Virus record (IMG/VR): IMGVR_UViG_3300033830_000011
Location: 1-6,696 of that record
Reading direction: 5' to 3' (one strand)
DNA length: 6,696 nucleotides
Positions 24 through 5,939 of this stretch are shown here, one piece after another. The notes below the pieces were generated by a model. The model saw only the letters and a list, made by a program, of their open reading frames with translations. It was not told the DNA's origin and searched no databases. Each line of letters begins with the position of its first letter. Positions within the stretch are counted from its first letter, which is position 1. The position numbers were made by a program, and so were the translations under genes.

Positions 24-93
24 ATTAGGGGGAAACTTAAAGACCCTTCAGATATCCCCAGTGGGGGACACTCCCACACCCCCAATCCTAAAG
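24..93. repeat. Intergenic modular G/C-run repeat, cluster I
   Basis: Contains GAAACTTAAAGACCCTTCAGA (32-52), GATATCCCCA (51-60), GACACTCCCA (67-76) and CCCCCAATCCTA (79-90). These blocks recur at 814-924 and 5630-5706. Confidence 0.9.
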
Positions 94-762: not shown

Positions 763-790
763 TCAAGGGGAAGTTGACAAAACGTCTCTT

Positions 791-926
791 TGGGGGGATA
801 TAATTCTGTGGGAGAAACTTAAAGACCCTTCAGACACTCCCATTAGGGGGATACCCCCTAAGACCCCCAATGCTAGTGAGGGAAACTTAAAGACCTTTCA
901 GATACCCCCACACCCCCAATGCTAAG
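791..926. repeat. Intergenic modular G/C-run repeat, cluster II (two tandem units)
   Basis: The 21-mer occurs at 814-834 (identical to 32-52) and at 882-902 (1 mismatch). CCCCCAATGCTA occurs at 864-875 and 913-924. There is a perfect inverted repeat TTAGGGGG-ATA-CCCCCTAA at 843-861. Confidence 0.92.
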
Positions 927-956: not shown

Positions 957-1700
957 ATGACAACTACAACACTCCCTCCACCGGTAACAGTTCCTGCTCT
1001 ATCGTCATCATCTGCAGTTGTATCATCTTTTTCACCCGACATCCTCGAATACGCTATGATTACAGTCTTCGCAGGAGTGATAATTTACATTGCGTACAAA
1101 CTCTTCCGTAAACCAAGTTACCGTTACTGGTTAAGGCTTATTGACGGTAACGAAGAAAGGGAGATACCGTTAACCAGGATAGACGAGGTCAACTTCGTCA
1201 GTGTGAGGGGGAATATACGTGTTTATAAAGACCCTACAGTTAAGATGATTAAGAGCGGAAGGAGGTACATACTTTACGGCTGGGGTATACAGCCCTACTA
1301 TATTGCAAAGGACCCGCAAACACTTGTCAACGTCGGGATCCGAGACTTAGTACTAAGGGTCGGAAACAAGGAGATAAAATTCGACGGAACGTGGAAGTCA
1401 ATCGTCGATTATTACACTTACCTGATAAAAAGTAGGATTGACACCATGAGAGAACTTACACTTGATACTAACACACAACTCGTCATAGCAGTAGATTATC
1501 CCAGTATATTCAAGAACTCCGTTGAGGACTTACTCCACACTAACGTAAAGCACTCACTGAGACAATTAGAGGAAATAGTAAACATAGAGAAGAACGTAAC
1601 GGCTACAAAGTCTACGGACTTCTCATGGATGAGATGGCTCATAATAGCGTTTATGATAATGGGTGTATTCCTGTTAGCCTTGTCGGTGATACACAAATGA
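957..1700 (+). CDS. Membrane protein with N- and C-terminal TM helices and a central soluble domain, 247 aa
   Basis: T/P/S-rich N-terminus, then a TM segment (YAMITVFAGVIIYIAY) followed by basic KLFRK, and a C-terminal TM segment (WLIIAFMIMGVFLLALSVI). The stop codon overlaps the ATPase start (ATGA at 1697-1700). Confidence 0.8.
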   Translation: MTTTTLPPPVTVPALSSSSAVVSSFSPDILEYAMITVFAGVIIYIAYKLFRKPSYRYWLRLIDGNEEREIPLTRIDEVNFVSVRGNIRVYKDPTVKMIKSGRRYILYGWGIQPYYIAKDPQTLVNVGIRDLVLRVGNKEIKFDGTWKSIVDYYTYLIKSRIDTMRELTLDTNTQLVIAVDYPSIFKNSVEDLLHTNVKHSLRQLEEIVNIEKNVTATKSTDFSWMRWLIIAFMIMGVFLLALSVIHK

Positions 1701-3004
1701 TATGCCGAAAAGTTGTAAGGAACTCCTCAGGGGAAGTACTCAGGAGACCTATCAATTGCAACGAAATTGCCCCTTATACTGACGTTAAGACGGTAGGAGA
1801 AGTCAAAGTAGAGGAGGTCAAGGGATATATAGTAGTTACCGCAGATGACGTATACGTTTACCCGAAAAGTGTATGGGAACGAATACAGTTTTACGTTGAC
1901 TATTTCAGAAAAAACGGTGTCTTCCCAAATCCCGGTTTGCTCTTTACGGGACCACCCGGAACCGGAAAAACAACATTGTCCAGAATAATTACCGAAATGT
2001 TAGGGTTGGACAGAGTTTTCTTCAGTTTCGCTGAAGTCTTAGGACCCTACGTCGGGCAGAGTGAAAAGGGTTTTCAAGCGAAAATCGATGAAGCTATGAG
2101 ATCACGCCCTTCTGCTCTAATAATCGATGAAGCTGACACTTTGCTCATGTCAAGAGAAGTTATGGTACAAAGGATAGGCGTGTCATCTGCAGACATTAAC
2201 ATAAAGTCAATGCTACTCGACACGATGTCCAAGATGAGGGAGAGTGACGTATTGTTTATTGCAATAACCAACATTTCACCATCTCTCATTGACAGTGCGT
2301 TAAAAAGAGAAGGGAGATTCGGTGAACCGGTCTACGTCCCGGTACCAACAAAGGACGCAATAGAGATACTCATAGAAAGGAAGTTTCCGCAACACATTAA
2401 TAAACGGGAAGAGTTAGCGTCAAAGCTCGCTTCATCAATGCAGAACTTCGCTAACATAGTGTCCTATCTGAAAAGATTGGAATACGGCATAGACAGACTT
2501 CCCGAGGAGTCATTACGCGGTTACAGGATAATTTACGTTAAGAAACCGTACAGTGATAGAAGACTTGAGAAGTTTTTTTCCTCACTCGACTACCCTGAGC
2601 TTTACTTCGCGAAAGCAAACCCGGATCTAGCGATACCTGTACTTGCAGCTTATTTCGTTTCTGTCGGTAAAGGGAACGTAGTCGTTTATAACGCAAAGGG
2701 ACTGGAAGAGGCGATAAAAGTAGCTGAAACATATAACGCCGTGCTCATCGTGGACGAGAGGAGCGGGATACCGATAAAGGAACTGTTTCGCGTTGCAAAC
2801 GTCCCGATTGTCGTTGTCGGAGACAATGTTACGGCAAAGGAAGTTTTTCATGTAGACGAATATAACGAAGACATGATAAACATCATCTTCAGTGCGTATA
2901 ACATTAGGGTGACACCGAAGAGATATGCCTTGTCTGATTTGGAAAGGATCGTTTACCACTGTAAAGGAGGTGATGAGAGTTGCGTAAAGAAGTTGAGAGA
3001 GTAG
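1697..3004 (+). CDS. AAA+ ATPase, classic clade (Cdc48/p97/Vps4-like), about 435 aa, with a degenerate C-terminal second AAA-like region
   Basis: Walker A GPPGTGKT (1949-1972), pore loop EVLGPYVGQSEK, Walker B ALIIDEAD, and sensor-1/SRH IAITN..SLIDSALKREGRF. I moved the start from 1625 to ATG 1697 because of the ATGA overlap with the upstream stop and the GGTGA SD at 1685-1689. Confidence 0.92.
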   Translation: MICRKVVRNSSGEVLRRPINCNEIAPYTDVKTVGEVKVEEVKGYIVVTADDVYVYPKSVWERIQFYVDYFRKNGVFPNPGLLFTGPPGTGKTTLSRIITEMLGLDRVFFSFAEVLGPYVGQSEKGFQAKIDEAMRSRPSALIIDEADTLLMSREVMVQRIGVSSADINIKSMLLDTMSKMRESDVLFIAITNISPSLIDSALKREGRFGEPVYVPVPTKDAIEILIERKFPQHINKREELASKLASSMQNFANIVSYLKRLEYGIDRLPEESLRGYRIIYVKKPYSDRRLEKFFSSLDYPELYFAKANPDLAIPVLAAYFVSVGKGNVVVYNAKGLEEAIKVAETYNAVLIVDERSGIPIKELFRVANVPIVVVGDNVTAKEVFHVDEYNEDMINIIFSAYNIRVTPKRYALSDLERIVYHCKGGDESCVKKLRE

Positions 3005-4041
3005 CCGTATTTCTAGGAGCGTTAACATTTGTAAACGGTGTATTATCATTGGAAGTAGCCTCCGTTATAGTGTACATGTTTTACATTCTAGCTGTAGTAT
3101 TCGCTTTCCTTTACCTTGTGAAAGACGACAGAAGGTTTGCTGACTTAATCGTGTTCTTTACGTTTGTCGCCGCATTTACTGCAGTTTCAGTATACAGAGT
3201 CCCATCACAAACGGACGAAGAAAGTCTTGTGTTATATGCGGCTTATCTTTTCAGACACGGGATTAACCCCTATACGGCTAACTTCATCAACGCTTATAAG
3301 ATGTTTCCCGTAGCCGAACCCGTCGTTACTGTTACACTTACTCCCAGTTATTACGTTAACGTGTTCGGTTACCCTGCGTTATATTTCGAGATAGCTTCCG
3401 TAGTGTACCCTCAGATCGTCACGCTTGTTACAACGTTTCTGCTTTACCCCTTTCTGAGGTGGAAGGGTAAGGAGAAGTTATTCTTCATTATAATGCTGAT
3501 AGAAGGGAGCTACTCAGCTTTCACCGGTGGTACGTTTGACATAATATCATTAACTATCGCGGTCATAGCACTTACAACGAAAGGTTGGATCAGGACAACA
3601 TTTATGACGTTGAGCGGTGACATTAAGCAATACACATTACTTTACTTACCGTTTATATGGAAGGATTATTGGGGTAAATGGAAAGAGCTGACAAAGAACA
3701 TCCTCATACCGCTAACCGTTTTTCTAATTCCCAACTTACCCTTCATCTCGTTTAAATGGGCTTTCGACGTATTAGGCCCTCTCACGCAACCCATTGCAAA
3801 CCAAGGTACTTCACTCAGTTTGTTGACTATGATAGGCGTGCCCATTCCGCATATTGCGTATACTATCGCTTTTCTGACGCTCTATGTCGCGTTGTTGGTG
3901 CTGTATAAACCTAACACTAAGTGGAAGTGGATCCTCCCGGCTTTCATCTGGCTCGTGAGTTGGAGGGATTTGAATTATTTCTTATTCTACATAACGGTAT
4001 GGGTGAGCAGTTATGAACTGGAAAGTGCTGGTGATAATTAG
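2980..4041 (+). CDS. Polytopic membrane protein, probable GT-C fold glycosyltransferase (GT87/PMT-like), 353 aa
   Basis: Many hydrophobic helices. The first large loop carries an acidic TDEE motif followed by GINPY and YPALYF, with a later IKQY motif; this pattern resembles lipid-linked-sugar-dependent GT-C enzymes. TTG start with a strong SD, GGAGGTGA, at 2966-2973. Confidence 0.7.
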   Translation: MRKEVERVAVFLGALTFVNGVLSLEVASVIVYMFYILAVVFAFLYLVKDDRRFADLIVFFTFVAAFTAVSVYRVPSQTDEESLVLYAAYLFRHGINPYTANFINAYKMFPVAEPVVTVTLTPSYYVNVFGYPALYFEIASVVYPQIVTLVTTFLLYPFLRWKGKEKLFFIIMLIEGSYSAFTGGTFDIISLTIAVIALTTKGWIRTTFMTLSGDIKQYTLLYLPFIWKDYWGKWKELTKNILIPLTVFLIPNLPFISFKWAFDVLGPLTQPIANQGTSLSLLTMIGVPIPHIAYTIAFLTLYVALLVLYKPNTKWKWILPAFIWLVSWRDLNYFLFYITVWVSSYELESAGDN

Positions 4042-4732
4042 TCTCATTGTACTCGAAATTCTCGCTATCTCTTTATTGTGGAAACCGACATTACCGTTGA
4101 CGGTCTACATCGTAAGGGTCTATGACGTCGGCGATGTAGGGTACTGGGACGTAGTATGTTTGAACGTTACTAACCACGGAAACTCTCCAATTCACCCTAT
4201 TTTCCTACTTAACGAGTTCGGTAGTGAGAAGAGGTGGGTCGTTTTGAGCCAAATCATACCATACGTACCGTATAATTGTACGTTGCCCGTTATTTCACCT
4301 CACTCATGGCGTCTTATCAATATCTCTGCACCATCACCCCTTTACTTCATACCGCCTTTTACACCGATTTATGTACAAGTCTATTCGGTGGGGGATACAC
4401 CCATACCCCCAATGCTCTTTGTAAACTCTCCCGTTTACATAACGCCTAACATAACTAGACCTCTTATCATCAACCCAAACTTTACCGTTCTGTATTATAG
4501 CGGGAAGTATAACGAGGAGTTACCGTGGGGTTGGTACGTCGAACTCGCTCCGGGGACTAAACTTTCTTACCATGACGGCGTTATTGTAAACGGTACAGCG
4601 ATATTTTACCAACCGGTTTTCGACGCGAATGTGACGGTAATCGGTTACAATGTCTCTTACACGGTCTCTGGCAATACACTGTTCATCTACGTCCATGACG
4701 GTTATGTGAGAGGTGTCGTACTTGGGTCGTGA
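4013..4732 (+). CDS. Membrane-anchored/secreted beta-rich glycoprotein, 239 aa
   Basis: N-terminal hydrophobic helix and a V/Y/P/N-rich ectodomain with 8 sequons (NVT, NCT, NIS, NIT, NFT, NGT, NVT, NVS). SD GGTGA at 4002-4006. Confidence 0.8.
   Translation: MNWKVLVIISLIVLEILAISLLWKPTLPLTVYIVRVYDVGDVGYWDVVCLNVTNHGNSPIHPIFLLNEFGSEKRWVVLSQIIPYVPYNCTLPVISPHSWRLINISAPSPLYFIPPFTPIYVQVYSVGDTPIPPMLFVNSPVYITPNITRPLIINPNFTVLYYSGKYNEELPWGWYVELAPGTKLSYHDGVIVNGTAIFYQPVFDANVTVIGYNVSYTVSGNTLFIYVHDGYVRGVVLGS
4388..4416. repeat. Intragenic copy of the G/C-run repeat
   Basis: GTGGGGGATACACCCATACCCCCAATGCT matches 61-89 (GTGGGGGACACTCCCACACCCCCAATCCT) at 25 of 29 positions without gaps. Confidence 0.8.
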
Positions 4733-5054
4733 AATATGTGAAAAATTTGTGAACGACATCATCAAGAAAGCAAAGAGTAAAATATATTATTTCAGCGACA
4801 GAAAGAACGGGTTTTACAGTTACTACGGTGTACAAGCTAAAAAGTTAAAGTACTTCATTGAGGACGATGAGGAGCTAGTGAAACTATGTGAAAAGAAGTA
4901 TGACACGCTGGAAATGTGTGTGTCAAAACTTCTAAATTATTGTGCGGAGAGAGAAAACTACCAACCGGCGATCTACATTTACGGTAGGATATTCTTTAAT
5001 AAACCGATAAACATAGATGAACTCAGGAGGTTGGTACAAAATGTTAGGAGATGA
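4722..5054 (+). CDS. Hypothetical soluble K/Y-rich protein, about 110 aa
   Basis: The ORF overlaps both neighbours in operon fashion. TTG at 4722 with SD GAGGTG (4710-4715) is preferred over GTG at 4713. Confidence 0.7.
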   Translation: MGREICEKFVNDIIKKAKSKIYYFSDRKNGFYSYYGVQAKKLKYFIEDDEELVKLCEKKYDTLEMCVSKLLNYCAERENYQPAIYIYGRIFFNKPINIDELRRLVQNVRR

Positions 5055-5379
5055 GTTGATCGTAACGTTATCGATAGACTTTATTGCGTTGTCGCTTCAG
5101 TTGTATCTCATCAACAAGGATACACCGTTTTATCTTGACGCTCTCATTACGATCTTTCTTGCGATTTTCAACTTCGCTTCATACTTAAACGGTATAATTT
5201 ATGTTGCTGGCGAGAATGAGACAAAGTTAAACAACTCAACAGTTATAATAACGCCTGTTTATAAGCCCGATCCCTTTGCTCCTCTTTTCATGATAGGGTT
5301 CGCTATAACGATAGTATCGGCTTTCCTGCTAATAATAAAAATATTTACGAAAAAAGGAAGTTTCGAATTATTTCCTTAA
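5041..5379 (+). CDS. Small 3-TM membrane protein, about 112 aa
   Basis: Three hydrophobic segments, with a loop ENETKLNNST carrying 3 sequons. ATG 5041 follows GGAGGT (5026-5031); the alternative start is 5017. Confidence 0.75.
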   Translation: MLGDELIVTLSIDFIALSLQLYLINKDTPFYLDALITIFLAIFNFASYLNGIIYVAGENETKLNNSTVIITPVYKPDPFAPLFMIGFAITIVSAFLLIIKIFTKKGSFELFP

Positions 5380-5583
5380 TGTCCTCTCTAAAACAGCACC
5401 GCAGTATGTAGTATCCAGATGTCTTTGTAAAAAGAACACGTTTTTAAATTTTTTACCACATACAGGGCATTTTTTCTCCTTTATCGAACCTAGGATGTCA
5501 ATATTCTTTTTTTCTGCATTCATAATCAGCCATCTCATTCCCAGTAACTTCTTATACCTTGAAACCGCATAAAGTTCTTTCAT
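5368..5583 (-). CDS. Small zinc-finger protein (C2H2/C2HC type), putative transcription regulator, 71 aa
   Basis: CPVCGKKFKNVFFLQRHLDTTYC gives C-x2-C-x3-F-x5-L-x2-H-x5-C. The protein is basic and has a correctly spaced upstream TATA box. Small zinc-finger proteins of this kind are common in crenarchaeal viruses. Confidence 0.85.
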   Translation of the reverse strand: MKELYAVSRYKKLLGMRWLIMNAEKKNIDILGSIKEKKCPVCGKKFKNVFFLQRHLDTTYCGAVLERTLRK

Positions 5584-5605: not shown

Positions 5606-5619
5606 ATTTAAAACTTTTA
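5606..5619 (-). promoter_or_regulatory. Archaeal BRE-TATA promoter for a leaderless zinc-finger transcript
   Basis: The minus strand reads TAAAAG-TTTTAAAT. TTTAAA lies at -29 to -24 relative to the ATG at 5583, the canonical spacing for leaderless mRNAs in Sulfolobales. Confidence 0.7.
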
Positions 5620-5620
5620 T

Positions 5621-5709
5621 TATTAGGGAGGTACCCCCATTAGAGGGATACTCCCACACCCCCAATCCTAGTTAGGGGAACACCTTCACCCCCCCCCCCC
5701 ATGCTAATA
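5621..5709. repeat. Intergenic modular G/C-run repeat, cluster III
   Basis: GGATACTCCCACACCCCCAATCCTA (5646-5670) matches 66-90 at 24 of 25 positions. It also contains GGTACCCCCA (5630-5639) and a C12 run followed by ATGCTAA (5689-5707). The 21-mer block is absent. Confidence 0.9.
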
Positions 5710-5738
5710 TTTTTATTATTATACAGAGACGTATAACT

Positions 5739-5939
5739 ATGGATGTTATTGACATAATTGTCGCATACAACCCCCTATTTTCCCCGGAAAAGGAGAACAT
5801 TATTATGGTACCGCTGGACTACGTAGAAGAAGTTAAACGATTAGCGAAATCACATAACGCAAAGATCCAAATTTTTCAGAAACGAAGGAGTAAATACGCT
5901 TATATAAGGTGGTACTACCCGGGTGAGAAGGATGAGTGA
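5739..5939 (+). CDS. Small hypothetical protein, 66 aa
   Basis: First ORF after cluster III, with an AT-rich TATA-like tract about 25-30 nt upstream. Its end overlaps the next gene start. Confidence 0.65.
   Translation: MDVIDIIVAYNPLFSPEKENIIMVPLDYVEEVKRLAKSHNAKIQIFQKRRSKYAYIRWYYPGEKDE

Follow-up and report, generated by a model that had tools for sequence, protein, structure and literature searches.

A short palindromic DNA repeat between genes and, in frame, inside membrane-protein genes of YNP1-like viruses

Why should a repeat that lies between the genes of a virus also stand, in frame, in the middle of one of its coding sequences? The question is raised by the 6,696-nucleotide (nt) IMG/VR contig 3300033830_000011 (the window, by which we mean the whole of this stretch), where DNA at positions 4388-4416 repeats intergenic DNA at 61-89 within an open reading frame (ORF) for a membrane-anchored protein of 239 amino acids (aa). 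The window is 81% identical to Sulfolobales virus YNP1 over 95% of its length and 78% identical to YNP2 across the 68% of its length that aligns; judged by sequence, it is a contig of a YNP1-like, fusellovirus-related virus of Sulfolobales. Our answer, to which we give a probability of roughly 55%, is that, among a group of archaeal viruses from hot springs, a palindromic repeat spreads as DNA into promoters and into a few tolerant spots of membrane-protein genes, and that the window copy is a filled allele holding one unit. The copy and its gene are as follows.

4388 to 4417, plus strand: coding copy (hot spot 1, or site 1), one GTG-type unit (30 nt); it replaces 9 nt (GGN TAY AAY, encoding G-Y-N) of empty alleles, a net gain of 21 nt.
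4013 to 4732, plus strand: 239-aa ORF (PHROG 16502, of unknown function) whose product has a membrane anchor at its N terminus; carries hot spots 3, 4, and 1.

The match of 4388-4416 to the intergenic repeat holds at 25 of 29 positions (86%), ungapped and on the same strand, and within the ORF the copy is translated in frame as VGDTPIPPML; a sequence-only reading of this DNA had claimed both, correctly. The copy belongs to a family of direct repeats in the window (61-89, 846-874, 895-923, 4388-4416, and 5641-5669). A degenerate 27-nt pattern drawn from the window copies matched at 63-89, 4390-4416, and 5643-5669, with no match in 200 dinucleotide-preserving shuffles. The 29-base match is a true member of the repeat family and not a chance resemblance.

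The repeat unit, of about 30 nt, reads [A/G]GT GGGGG AYA CCCCC ACA CCCCC AATGCT: a perfect palindrome of 17 to 19 nt is followed by 3 to 5 nt, a third C5 run, and the tail AATGCT(A). Among related contigs the commonest family unit is GTGGGGGATACCCCCAC, then ACCCCCAATGCT. In the 148 palindrome cores counted across the loci examined, the perfect palindromes measured 17 and 19 nt. Two types of palindrome occur across related loci, GTGGGGG-ATA-CCCCCAC (GTG type, 31 copies) and TTAGGGGG-ATA-CCCCCTAA (TTA type, 21 copies), and the outer arm bases co-vary between them. The GTG-type unit is 30 nt long and the additional TTA-type unit of double arrays 27 nt; both lengths are divisible by three, with two sense frames open, and because of these lengths whole-unit insertions preserve the reading frame. 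The coding copy of the window agrees with the family consensus at 27 of 29 positions. Both mismatches are substitutions in the 3' arm of the palindrome and break two of its seven pairs; the local hairpin has a folding energy of -5.8 kcal/mol (z, -1.0), compared with -7.6 kcal/mol (z, -2.1) for the intact allele of contig L032. The window copy has lost the palindrome hairpin and is slightly decayed.

Chance resemblance, or an artefact of metagenome assembly, is so improbable that we give it next to no weight. The unit is of low complexity (G5 and C5 runs), short repeats can confuse assemblers, and unit-like strings occur in two unrelated viral contigs. These points are set against the empty shuffles and the agreement with the consensus, identical junctions in independent contigs of other samples (L032, L034, and L049), flanks that both come from one gene site, unlike those of a chimeric join, and the presence of units in the Sanger-era genomes of cultured Sulfolobus spindle-shaped viruses (SSVs). 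In the two unrelated contigs, near-identical strings (palindrome plus third C5 run) lie at ~714-738 in L093 and ~1222-1245 in L101 (66% and 21% G+C, respectively); either chance or convergence on a motif that forms structure (a hairpin plus triplex design) could account for them.

Alignment of homologues, a check that the sequence-only reading had proposed, showed the segment at 4388 to be an insertion relative to them. Eight of eight IMG/VR homologues lack the unit and read ..VQVYS-G[YF][ND]-FVNSP.., and 52 metagenome loci were added to the comparison. Of 48 related contigs, 30 were empty at site 1 (..VQVYS-GYN-FVNSP..); the other 18 carried one or two units there, in frame in every case. Measured between DNA anchors, the site spanned 83 nt in empty alleles and 95 to 146 nt in filled ones. 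The distinct length differences between filled and empty alleles, nine at site 1 and seven at hot spot 3, were all multiples of three; those at site 1, among them +12, +21, +30, and +39, were built of the conserved unit.

The alleles can be placed in relation to one another. Metagenome contig L049, the nearest relative of the window that was found (~94% identity), differs from L011 (89% identical and empty at site 1) by an exact insertion of 30 nt that kept the original G-F-N codons and made no target duplication. The window-type allele, found also in L032 and L034, is the 30-nt insertion allele minus 9 nt; a second class of alleles lost 9 nt on the other side, and further alleles carry two units. 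The alignments show the window allele as a one-unit insertion that later underwent a 9-nt deletion and two hairpin-breaking point changes. Filled and empty alleles were found together in the same samples. On this comparison, the site 1 unit is an optional insertion, polymorphic in the virus population and dispensable, and most of the related viruses sampled have no unit here. It had also been suggested that a peptide conserved with freely varying synonymous sites would mark the match as chance. The copy did prove to be a family member, but that test is inapplicable as posed because the homologues vary in presence or absence of the unit and in its copy number. Most likely, the coding copy at 4388 has no function of its own.

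Site 1 is not alone. Three more in-frame hot spots lie within ~750 nt, in the 239-aa ORF and in the membrane-protein gene upstream of it, and the window is empty at all three.

2980 to 4041, plus strand: ORF of a 353-aa multi-pass membrane protein, PHROG 21437; carries hot spot 2.
3667 to 3681, plus strand: hot spot 2, at residues 230-234 of the 353-aa protein, where the window has the empty allele (TATTGGGGTAAATGG); 16 of 36 contigs are filled, with 1 to 4 units.
4022 to 4039, plus strand: hot spot 3, at codons 4-9 of the 239-aa ORF, where the window has the empty allele; 19 of 48 contigs are filled, with 1 to 4 units.
4238 to 4261, plus strand: hot spot 4, where the window has the empty allele (..RWVV-LSQIIPYV-PYN); 10 of 53 contigs have a filled one (SVGDTPTPPAYA).

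Hot spot 2 falls in a hydrophilic loop that precedes a hydrophobic segment, hot spot 3 inside the overlap with the upstream ORF, and hot spot 4 after ..EKRWVV. The unit is read as VGDTPTPP at sites 1 and 4 and as RGIPPSGGHPHTP and RGVPPKTPNA at sites 2 and 3. Because the frame differs from site to site, what recurs is a DNA unit and not a peptide. On a tree of the ORF computed without the insert columns, sites 1, 3, and 4 required at least 7, 5, and 5 changes of state, respectively.

The segment of the window at ~3600-4125 is mosaic, being closest (up to 97%) to L012 and L013, of lineages empty at sites 2 and 3; outside 3600-4125 the window is closest to L049 and L011, both of which are filled at these sites. 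Recombination seems to have removed two arrays from this segment of the window. The single unit of YNP1 (L019 5190-5240, record coordinates) also lies at hot spot 2, inverted, and the ORF is interrupted there (the gp14/gp13 boundary); the YNP1 record has N bases near the interrupted ORF, and a sequencing error is possible.

Could the protein be the object of selection? The units would then be cassettes that lengthen exposed loops of two membrane or virion proteins with Pro/Thr/Gly-rich linkers and vary host recognition, and the intergenic arrays would be their donors. That the four hot spots crowd into two adjacent membrane-protein genes (a hydrophilic loop, an N-terminal tail, and two ectodomain positions) and that 1 to 4 units are always held in frame would suit this explanation, as would the unit-unit junctions at sites 2 and 3, where AAT GCT AGT (in L016, L032, L033, L055, and L058) encodes N-A-S, an N-glycosylation sequon. 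We nevertheless consider it very unlikely. One DNA unit is read in two frames as unrelated peptides; identical units occur in noncoding DNA and in integrase genes; and the copies of the window clade carry substitutions at about the frequency of the backbone, most of which alter the peptide. An AlphaFold2 model of the 239-aa protein from 31 sequences (mean predicted local distance difference test score [pLDDT] of 44, and below 50 over residues 23-171) is too poor to place the hot spots or to call them surface loops.

Between genes, the units of the window form three arrays.

24 to 92, plus strand: intergenic array 1, in which a GTG-type unit with its tail (61-89) follows a G5..C5 pair that encloses a 22-nt insert (block A, 28-59).
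785 to 925, plus strand: intergenic array 2, a block A copy, a TTA-type unit (843-875), a block A copy, and a tail unit (895-925).
5627 to 5706, plus strand: intergenic array 3, decayed units with a C12 run plus ATGCTA at their end.

Array 1 runs up to the TATA box (97-107) of a gene that starts at 130, array 2 abuts the TATA box (927-941) of the gene starting at 957, and array 3, ahead of the gene that starts at 5739, has TATA box copies (TTTTATTATTA) on both flanks. Across relatives, the terminal unit of an intergenic array abuts a TATA box within 0 to 12 nt, in the orientation of the gene, in 45 of 89 distinct tail contexts; in 16 more, a unit precedes another unit. The array junctions vary: a GCTA repeat is present at promoter 957, a TATA box is duplicated at some promoters (see below), and elsewhere there is no duplication. 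In block A (28-59, 810-841, and 878-909), the 22-nt string AAACTTAAAGACCCTTCAGATA separates G5 from C5, where the palindrome would have its 3-nt loop, and thus looks nested within a unit; its 19-nt core was found only in the window contig and one relative. A block-A-like match (15 of 17) at 1226-1242, in the ORF at 957-1700, was treated as chance and as native coding sequence; its peptide (VYKDPTVKM) and most of its DNA are conserved in the unit-free YNP1 and YNP2.

The position of the arrays raises the possibility that the unit is a working cis-regulatory element, such as an operator, an upstream activating site with a tail resembling a B recognition element (BRE), or a 3'-end hairpin of the mRNA upstream, and that coding copies are internal regulatory sites or promoters. 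We regard this as unlikely. Terminal units do point to the downstream gene from the edge of its TATA box; however, homologous promoters occur both with and without arrays. The same block of genes is present in YNP1, which has a single unit in 40.9 kb, and in YNP2, which has none of the full motif, and because these two genomes are nearly unit free, the units are dispensable for expression of the same genes. The tail ATGCTAA resembles native sequence upstream of a TATA box in YNP1 (ATGCTAACA), and the symmetry of the palindrome, with its co-varying outer arm bases, would suit a hairpin or a protein that binds as a dimer. Array 3 has a C2H2 zinc-finger gene next to it (5368-5583, minus strand), but YNP1 has that gene too. 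A TATA-like TTATATTTTT follows the site 3 array; nevertheless, each of the four coding sites is found both filled and empty within single samples. At 4388 the palindrome of the coding copy is broken and no TATA box adjoins it: the copy precedes CTTTGTAAAC, the sole TATA-like string, TTTACATAAC (4436), is also found in empty alleles, and no in-frame start codon lies downstream of the copy before the next gene. The suggestion that the copy provides an internal promoter for downstream genes is therefore unsupported rather than disproved. The sequence-only reading had also proposed that the motif is needed at intervals along the genome, starting from the observation that genes fill 957-5583 without intergenic space. 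The ORF list of the window bears out the observation, but the proposal is contradicted by the 30 of 48 alleles that are empty, by the near absence of units from YNP1 and YNP2, and by their uneven distribution in the unit-rich L011 (20.7 kb), where they cluster in 1-12 kb and are absent from 12-20.7 kb.

In a phage collection, the only matches of the window other than to the YNP viruses were to SSV-K1 and three Kamchatka SSVs; they involve 42 nt of array 2 and fall within the integrase gene, where the units of SSV-K1 adjoin an attachment (att) core derived from tRNA-Asp. We examined the integrase genes of SSV1, 2, 3, 4, 5, 6, 7, K1, RH, and Lassen, of SSV19, SSeV, and an SSV10 strain, and of two contigs, and in all 15 SSV-type genes units flank the tRNA-derived attP core on one or both sides (loci L003 1490-1545; L028-L031 and L084-L091; L006 ~110-165; and L025 ~2150-2290). 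The flanking units often form an inverted pair with their tails outward, GTG type on one side and TTA type on the other, like terminal inverted repeats of ~30 bp. As part of Int they are read in the frame used at sites 2 and 3 (..RGTPPKTP..).

Accordingly, a recombination protein of fuselloviruses, either the SSV-type integrase or a partner of it, may recognize the unit or use it as an arm site, with the copies in YNP1-like viruses as secondary sites or as joints for the exchange of gene segments or promoters; the coding copy would then be a by-product or footprint of a site-specific or recombinase-assisted event. We think this explanation rather improbable, even though several observations fit it. 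Beyond the constant flanking of attP, the whole unit-att module of SSV-K1 is inverted relative to int, no further unit copies were found in the SSV portions examined, the units of SSV-Lassen lie within ~3 nt of the annotated virus-host identity segment, and the site 2 unit is inverted in some genomes relative to others. On the other hand, the att stretch or inverted repeats of the anticodon arm are reported to suffice in vitro for IntSSV1 and IntSSV2, with no arm sites described (review, PMC8371274). Furthermore, none of the window units has a tRNA-like core nearby, neither a unit nor a tRNA fragment lies upstream of the integrase gene in YNP1, and the 3-nt spacer of the palindrome is too short for the overlap region of a tyrosine recombinase.

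The repeat family appears to be undescribed, since att-flanking palindromes are unmentioned in reviews and in SSV comparative papers and the motif strings were not found in the searchable literature. A bolder proposal, which we hold tentatively and below our preferred answer, is that this family is specific to fusellovirus-like viruses of Sulfolobales and serves as the recognition site or recombination joint of a virus-encoded system, swapping att cassettes and shuffling gene segments, and is not passive junk. Its module would be the codon-compatible G5-loop-C5-loop-C5 of 27 to 30 nt, a hairpin plus perhaps a triplex, which brackets attP in SSV-type integrase genes and in YNP1-like viruses spreads to promoters and, in frame, to membrane-protein genes. 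Two other origins of the repeat were tried and rejected. One was a tRNA: the 42-nt match in SSV-K1 adjoins the tRNA-Asp-derived att core and is not within it, ARAGORN and Rfam found nothing (no Rfam match in the window at an E value of ≤1), and there is no tRNA in the relatives. The other was the host: the strict unit pattern had one match in 185,579 species genomes, in a Bacillota genome and probably by chance, although diverged host or provirus copies would escape so strict a pattern.

We return to the spread of the unit as DNA, the reading that we prefer. The units would normally form short head-to-tail arrays directly upstream of TATA boxes, and would have been copied into four permissive spots of two adjacent membrane-protein genes. 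Homology between existing copies and targets that look like them would guide the copying, and its probable routes are template switching or short-patch gene conversion, with slippage to change the copy number; the hairpin or another non-B structure of the unit may favor the copying, and the protein would merely tolerate an added loop rich in Pro, Thr, and Gly. The empty targets resemble the ends of the unit (TTGGGGTAAATGG at site 2, GGGRTAT..AAT at site 1, AGT..ATGGCT at site 4, and GCTA at promoter 957), and in the coding targets this resemblance suggests copying guided by homology, not insertion by a transposase that makes a target duplication of fixed length. Pfam found no domain of a transposase or an extra recombinase in the ORFs of the window or in 16 ORFs in 20.7 kb of L011, where the matches were to an AAA ATPase, a HAD/PNKP phosphatase, an acyltransferase, a helicase, and a C2H2 finger, and no transposase is annotated in YNP1 or YNP2. 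In Sulfolobus, very short homologies suffice for homologous recombination, and conversion tracts are short and patchy.

Several observations weigh against this reading. The mechanism of copying is one that we infer from the junctions alone. At two or three promoters a TATA box of ~11 nt stands on both sides of the array (promoter 5739, L008, and L026), where empty alleles have a single box (the duplicates lie at 5610-5626 and 5707-5723 in the window, at ~3650-3700 in L017, at ~1050-1135 in L008, and at ~1150-1260 in L026); such an arrangement resembles a target-site duplication or the outcome of unequal exchange between TATA boxes. Nearly all copies of the unit share the orientation of transcription, which, together with the co-variation of the arm bases, hints at a strand-specific or structure-dependent role. 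Palindromes are perfect in 43 of 71 coding copies (61%) and in 27 of 45 noncoding ones (60%). This fits constant homogenization or gene conversion or, equally, selection for the palindrome everywhere; the idea that coding copies have decayed more than intergenic ones was rejected on these figures, which do not separate junk from function. Finally, the fixed position of units beside attP suggests that the unit has a molecular partner in fuselloviruses, and because of that link a role as a recombination site keeps substantial weight.

The remaining observations concern the genes themselves. YNP1 and YNP2 have circular genomes of 35 to 41 kb with genes of fusellovirus type, for a DnaA-like protein, an integrase, and a virion structural protein. 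Both encode a homologue of transcription initiation factor B (TFB) (L019 35401-36405 in YNP1 and L020 29607-30629 in YNP2), which is unusual in a virus; it shows no correlation with the presence of the repeat. The 239-aa protein, which the sequence-only reading had called a glycoprotein, has one N-terminal hydrophobic helix and many N-x-S/T sequons and matched no Pfam family; function searches with it and with the 353-aa protein gave only PHROGs of unknown function. The zinc-finger ORF at 5368-5583, divergent from array 3, encodes 71 aa with a weak C2H2 match below the Pfam cutoff, and its product is a candidate DNA binder.

What the locus offers is a population of archaeal viruses whose ORFs one short DNA palindrome has entered again and again without disrupting them, and four natural pairs of filled and empty alleles with which the cost or contribution of such repeats can be assessed. 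The link to attP gives a handle on how SSV-type integrases acquire or switch their tRNA targets and on why fusellovirus genomes recombine in modules. For annotation there is a caution: length variants of these genes reflect inserted repeats and should not be taken for separate gene families or errors of sequencing.

How does the unit compare with known systems? The design of an intramolecular triplex (H-DNA) is purine-loop-pyrimidine-loop-pyrimidine, and such non-B DNA is recombinogenic. The G5-loop-C5-loop-C5 of the unit has this textbook order, and C5-ACA-C5 is a mirror repeat, but the tracts are only 5 nt long, and their stability at about 80°C and a near-neutral cytoplasmic pH is doubtful. 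Like the accessory arm sites of lambda-type integration, the SSV units flank the att core symmetrically; unlike them, they are reported not to be needed for SSV recombination in vitro, and the window units lie beside no att core. Intergenic units resemble archaeal operators or upstream activating sites in lying directly upstream of the BRE and TATA box in the orientation of the gene, which the coding copy at 4388 does not.

Among repeated elements, Correia elements (CREE) and other mobile promoters are similarly small repeats beside genes that contribute promoter-proximal sequence. CREE, however, are 100 to 155 bp long, with terminal inverted repeats and a TA duplication, whereas here there is no constant target duplication and promoter activity is putative. 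The fixed-length target-site duplication of miniature inverted-repeat transposable elements (MITEs) and other miniature elements derived from insertion sequences likewise has no counterpart in the inconstant junctions of the unit. REP, BIME, and REPIN sequences are, like the unit, short (20 to 40 nt), G+C-rich, multicopy palindromes near gene ends that form a hairpin and are often paired. They differ in being extragenic and in having a RAYT (Y1) gene, whereas here there are four in-frame coding hot spots and a handful of copies per genome; no Y1 (RAYT) transposase was found in the window, in 20.7 kb of L011, or in the annotation of YNP1 and YNP2, a complete unit-rich genome being outside the scope of the search. 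The 12-bp indels of variants of the rudivirus SIRV1 are reportedly multiples of a unit without conserved sequence or palindrome. They share with our repeat that they preserve the frame, occur in ORFs and intergenic DNA of Sulfolobus viruses, and are polymorphic within populations, but here a defined 30-nt unit recurs, and lengths are not confined to multiples of 12 bp.

Rickettsia palindromic elements (RPEs) are said to be palindromic repeats that occur both between genes and in frame inside coding genes, and to our knowledge no smaller or earlier viral-archaeal analogue of them is known. RPEs are 100 to 150 bp long and belong to a bacterial chromosome, whereas the unit described here is of 27 to 30 nt, occurs in archaeal viruses in arrays of 1 to 4, and is tied to promoters and attP. 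The two are alike in combining intergenic with in-frame copies, in adding a peptide segment that is tolerated, and in being polymorphic between related genomes.
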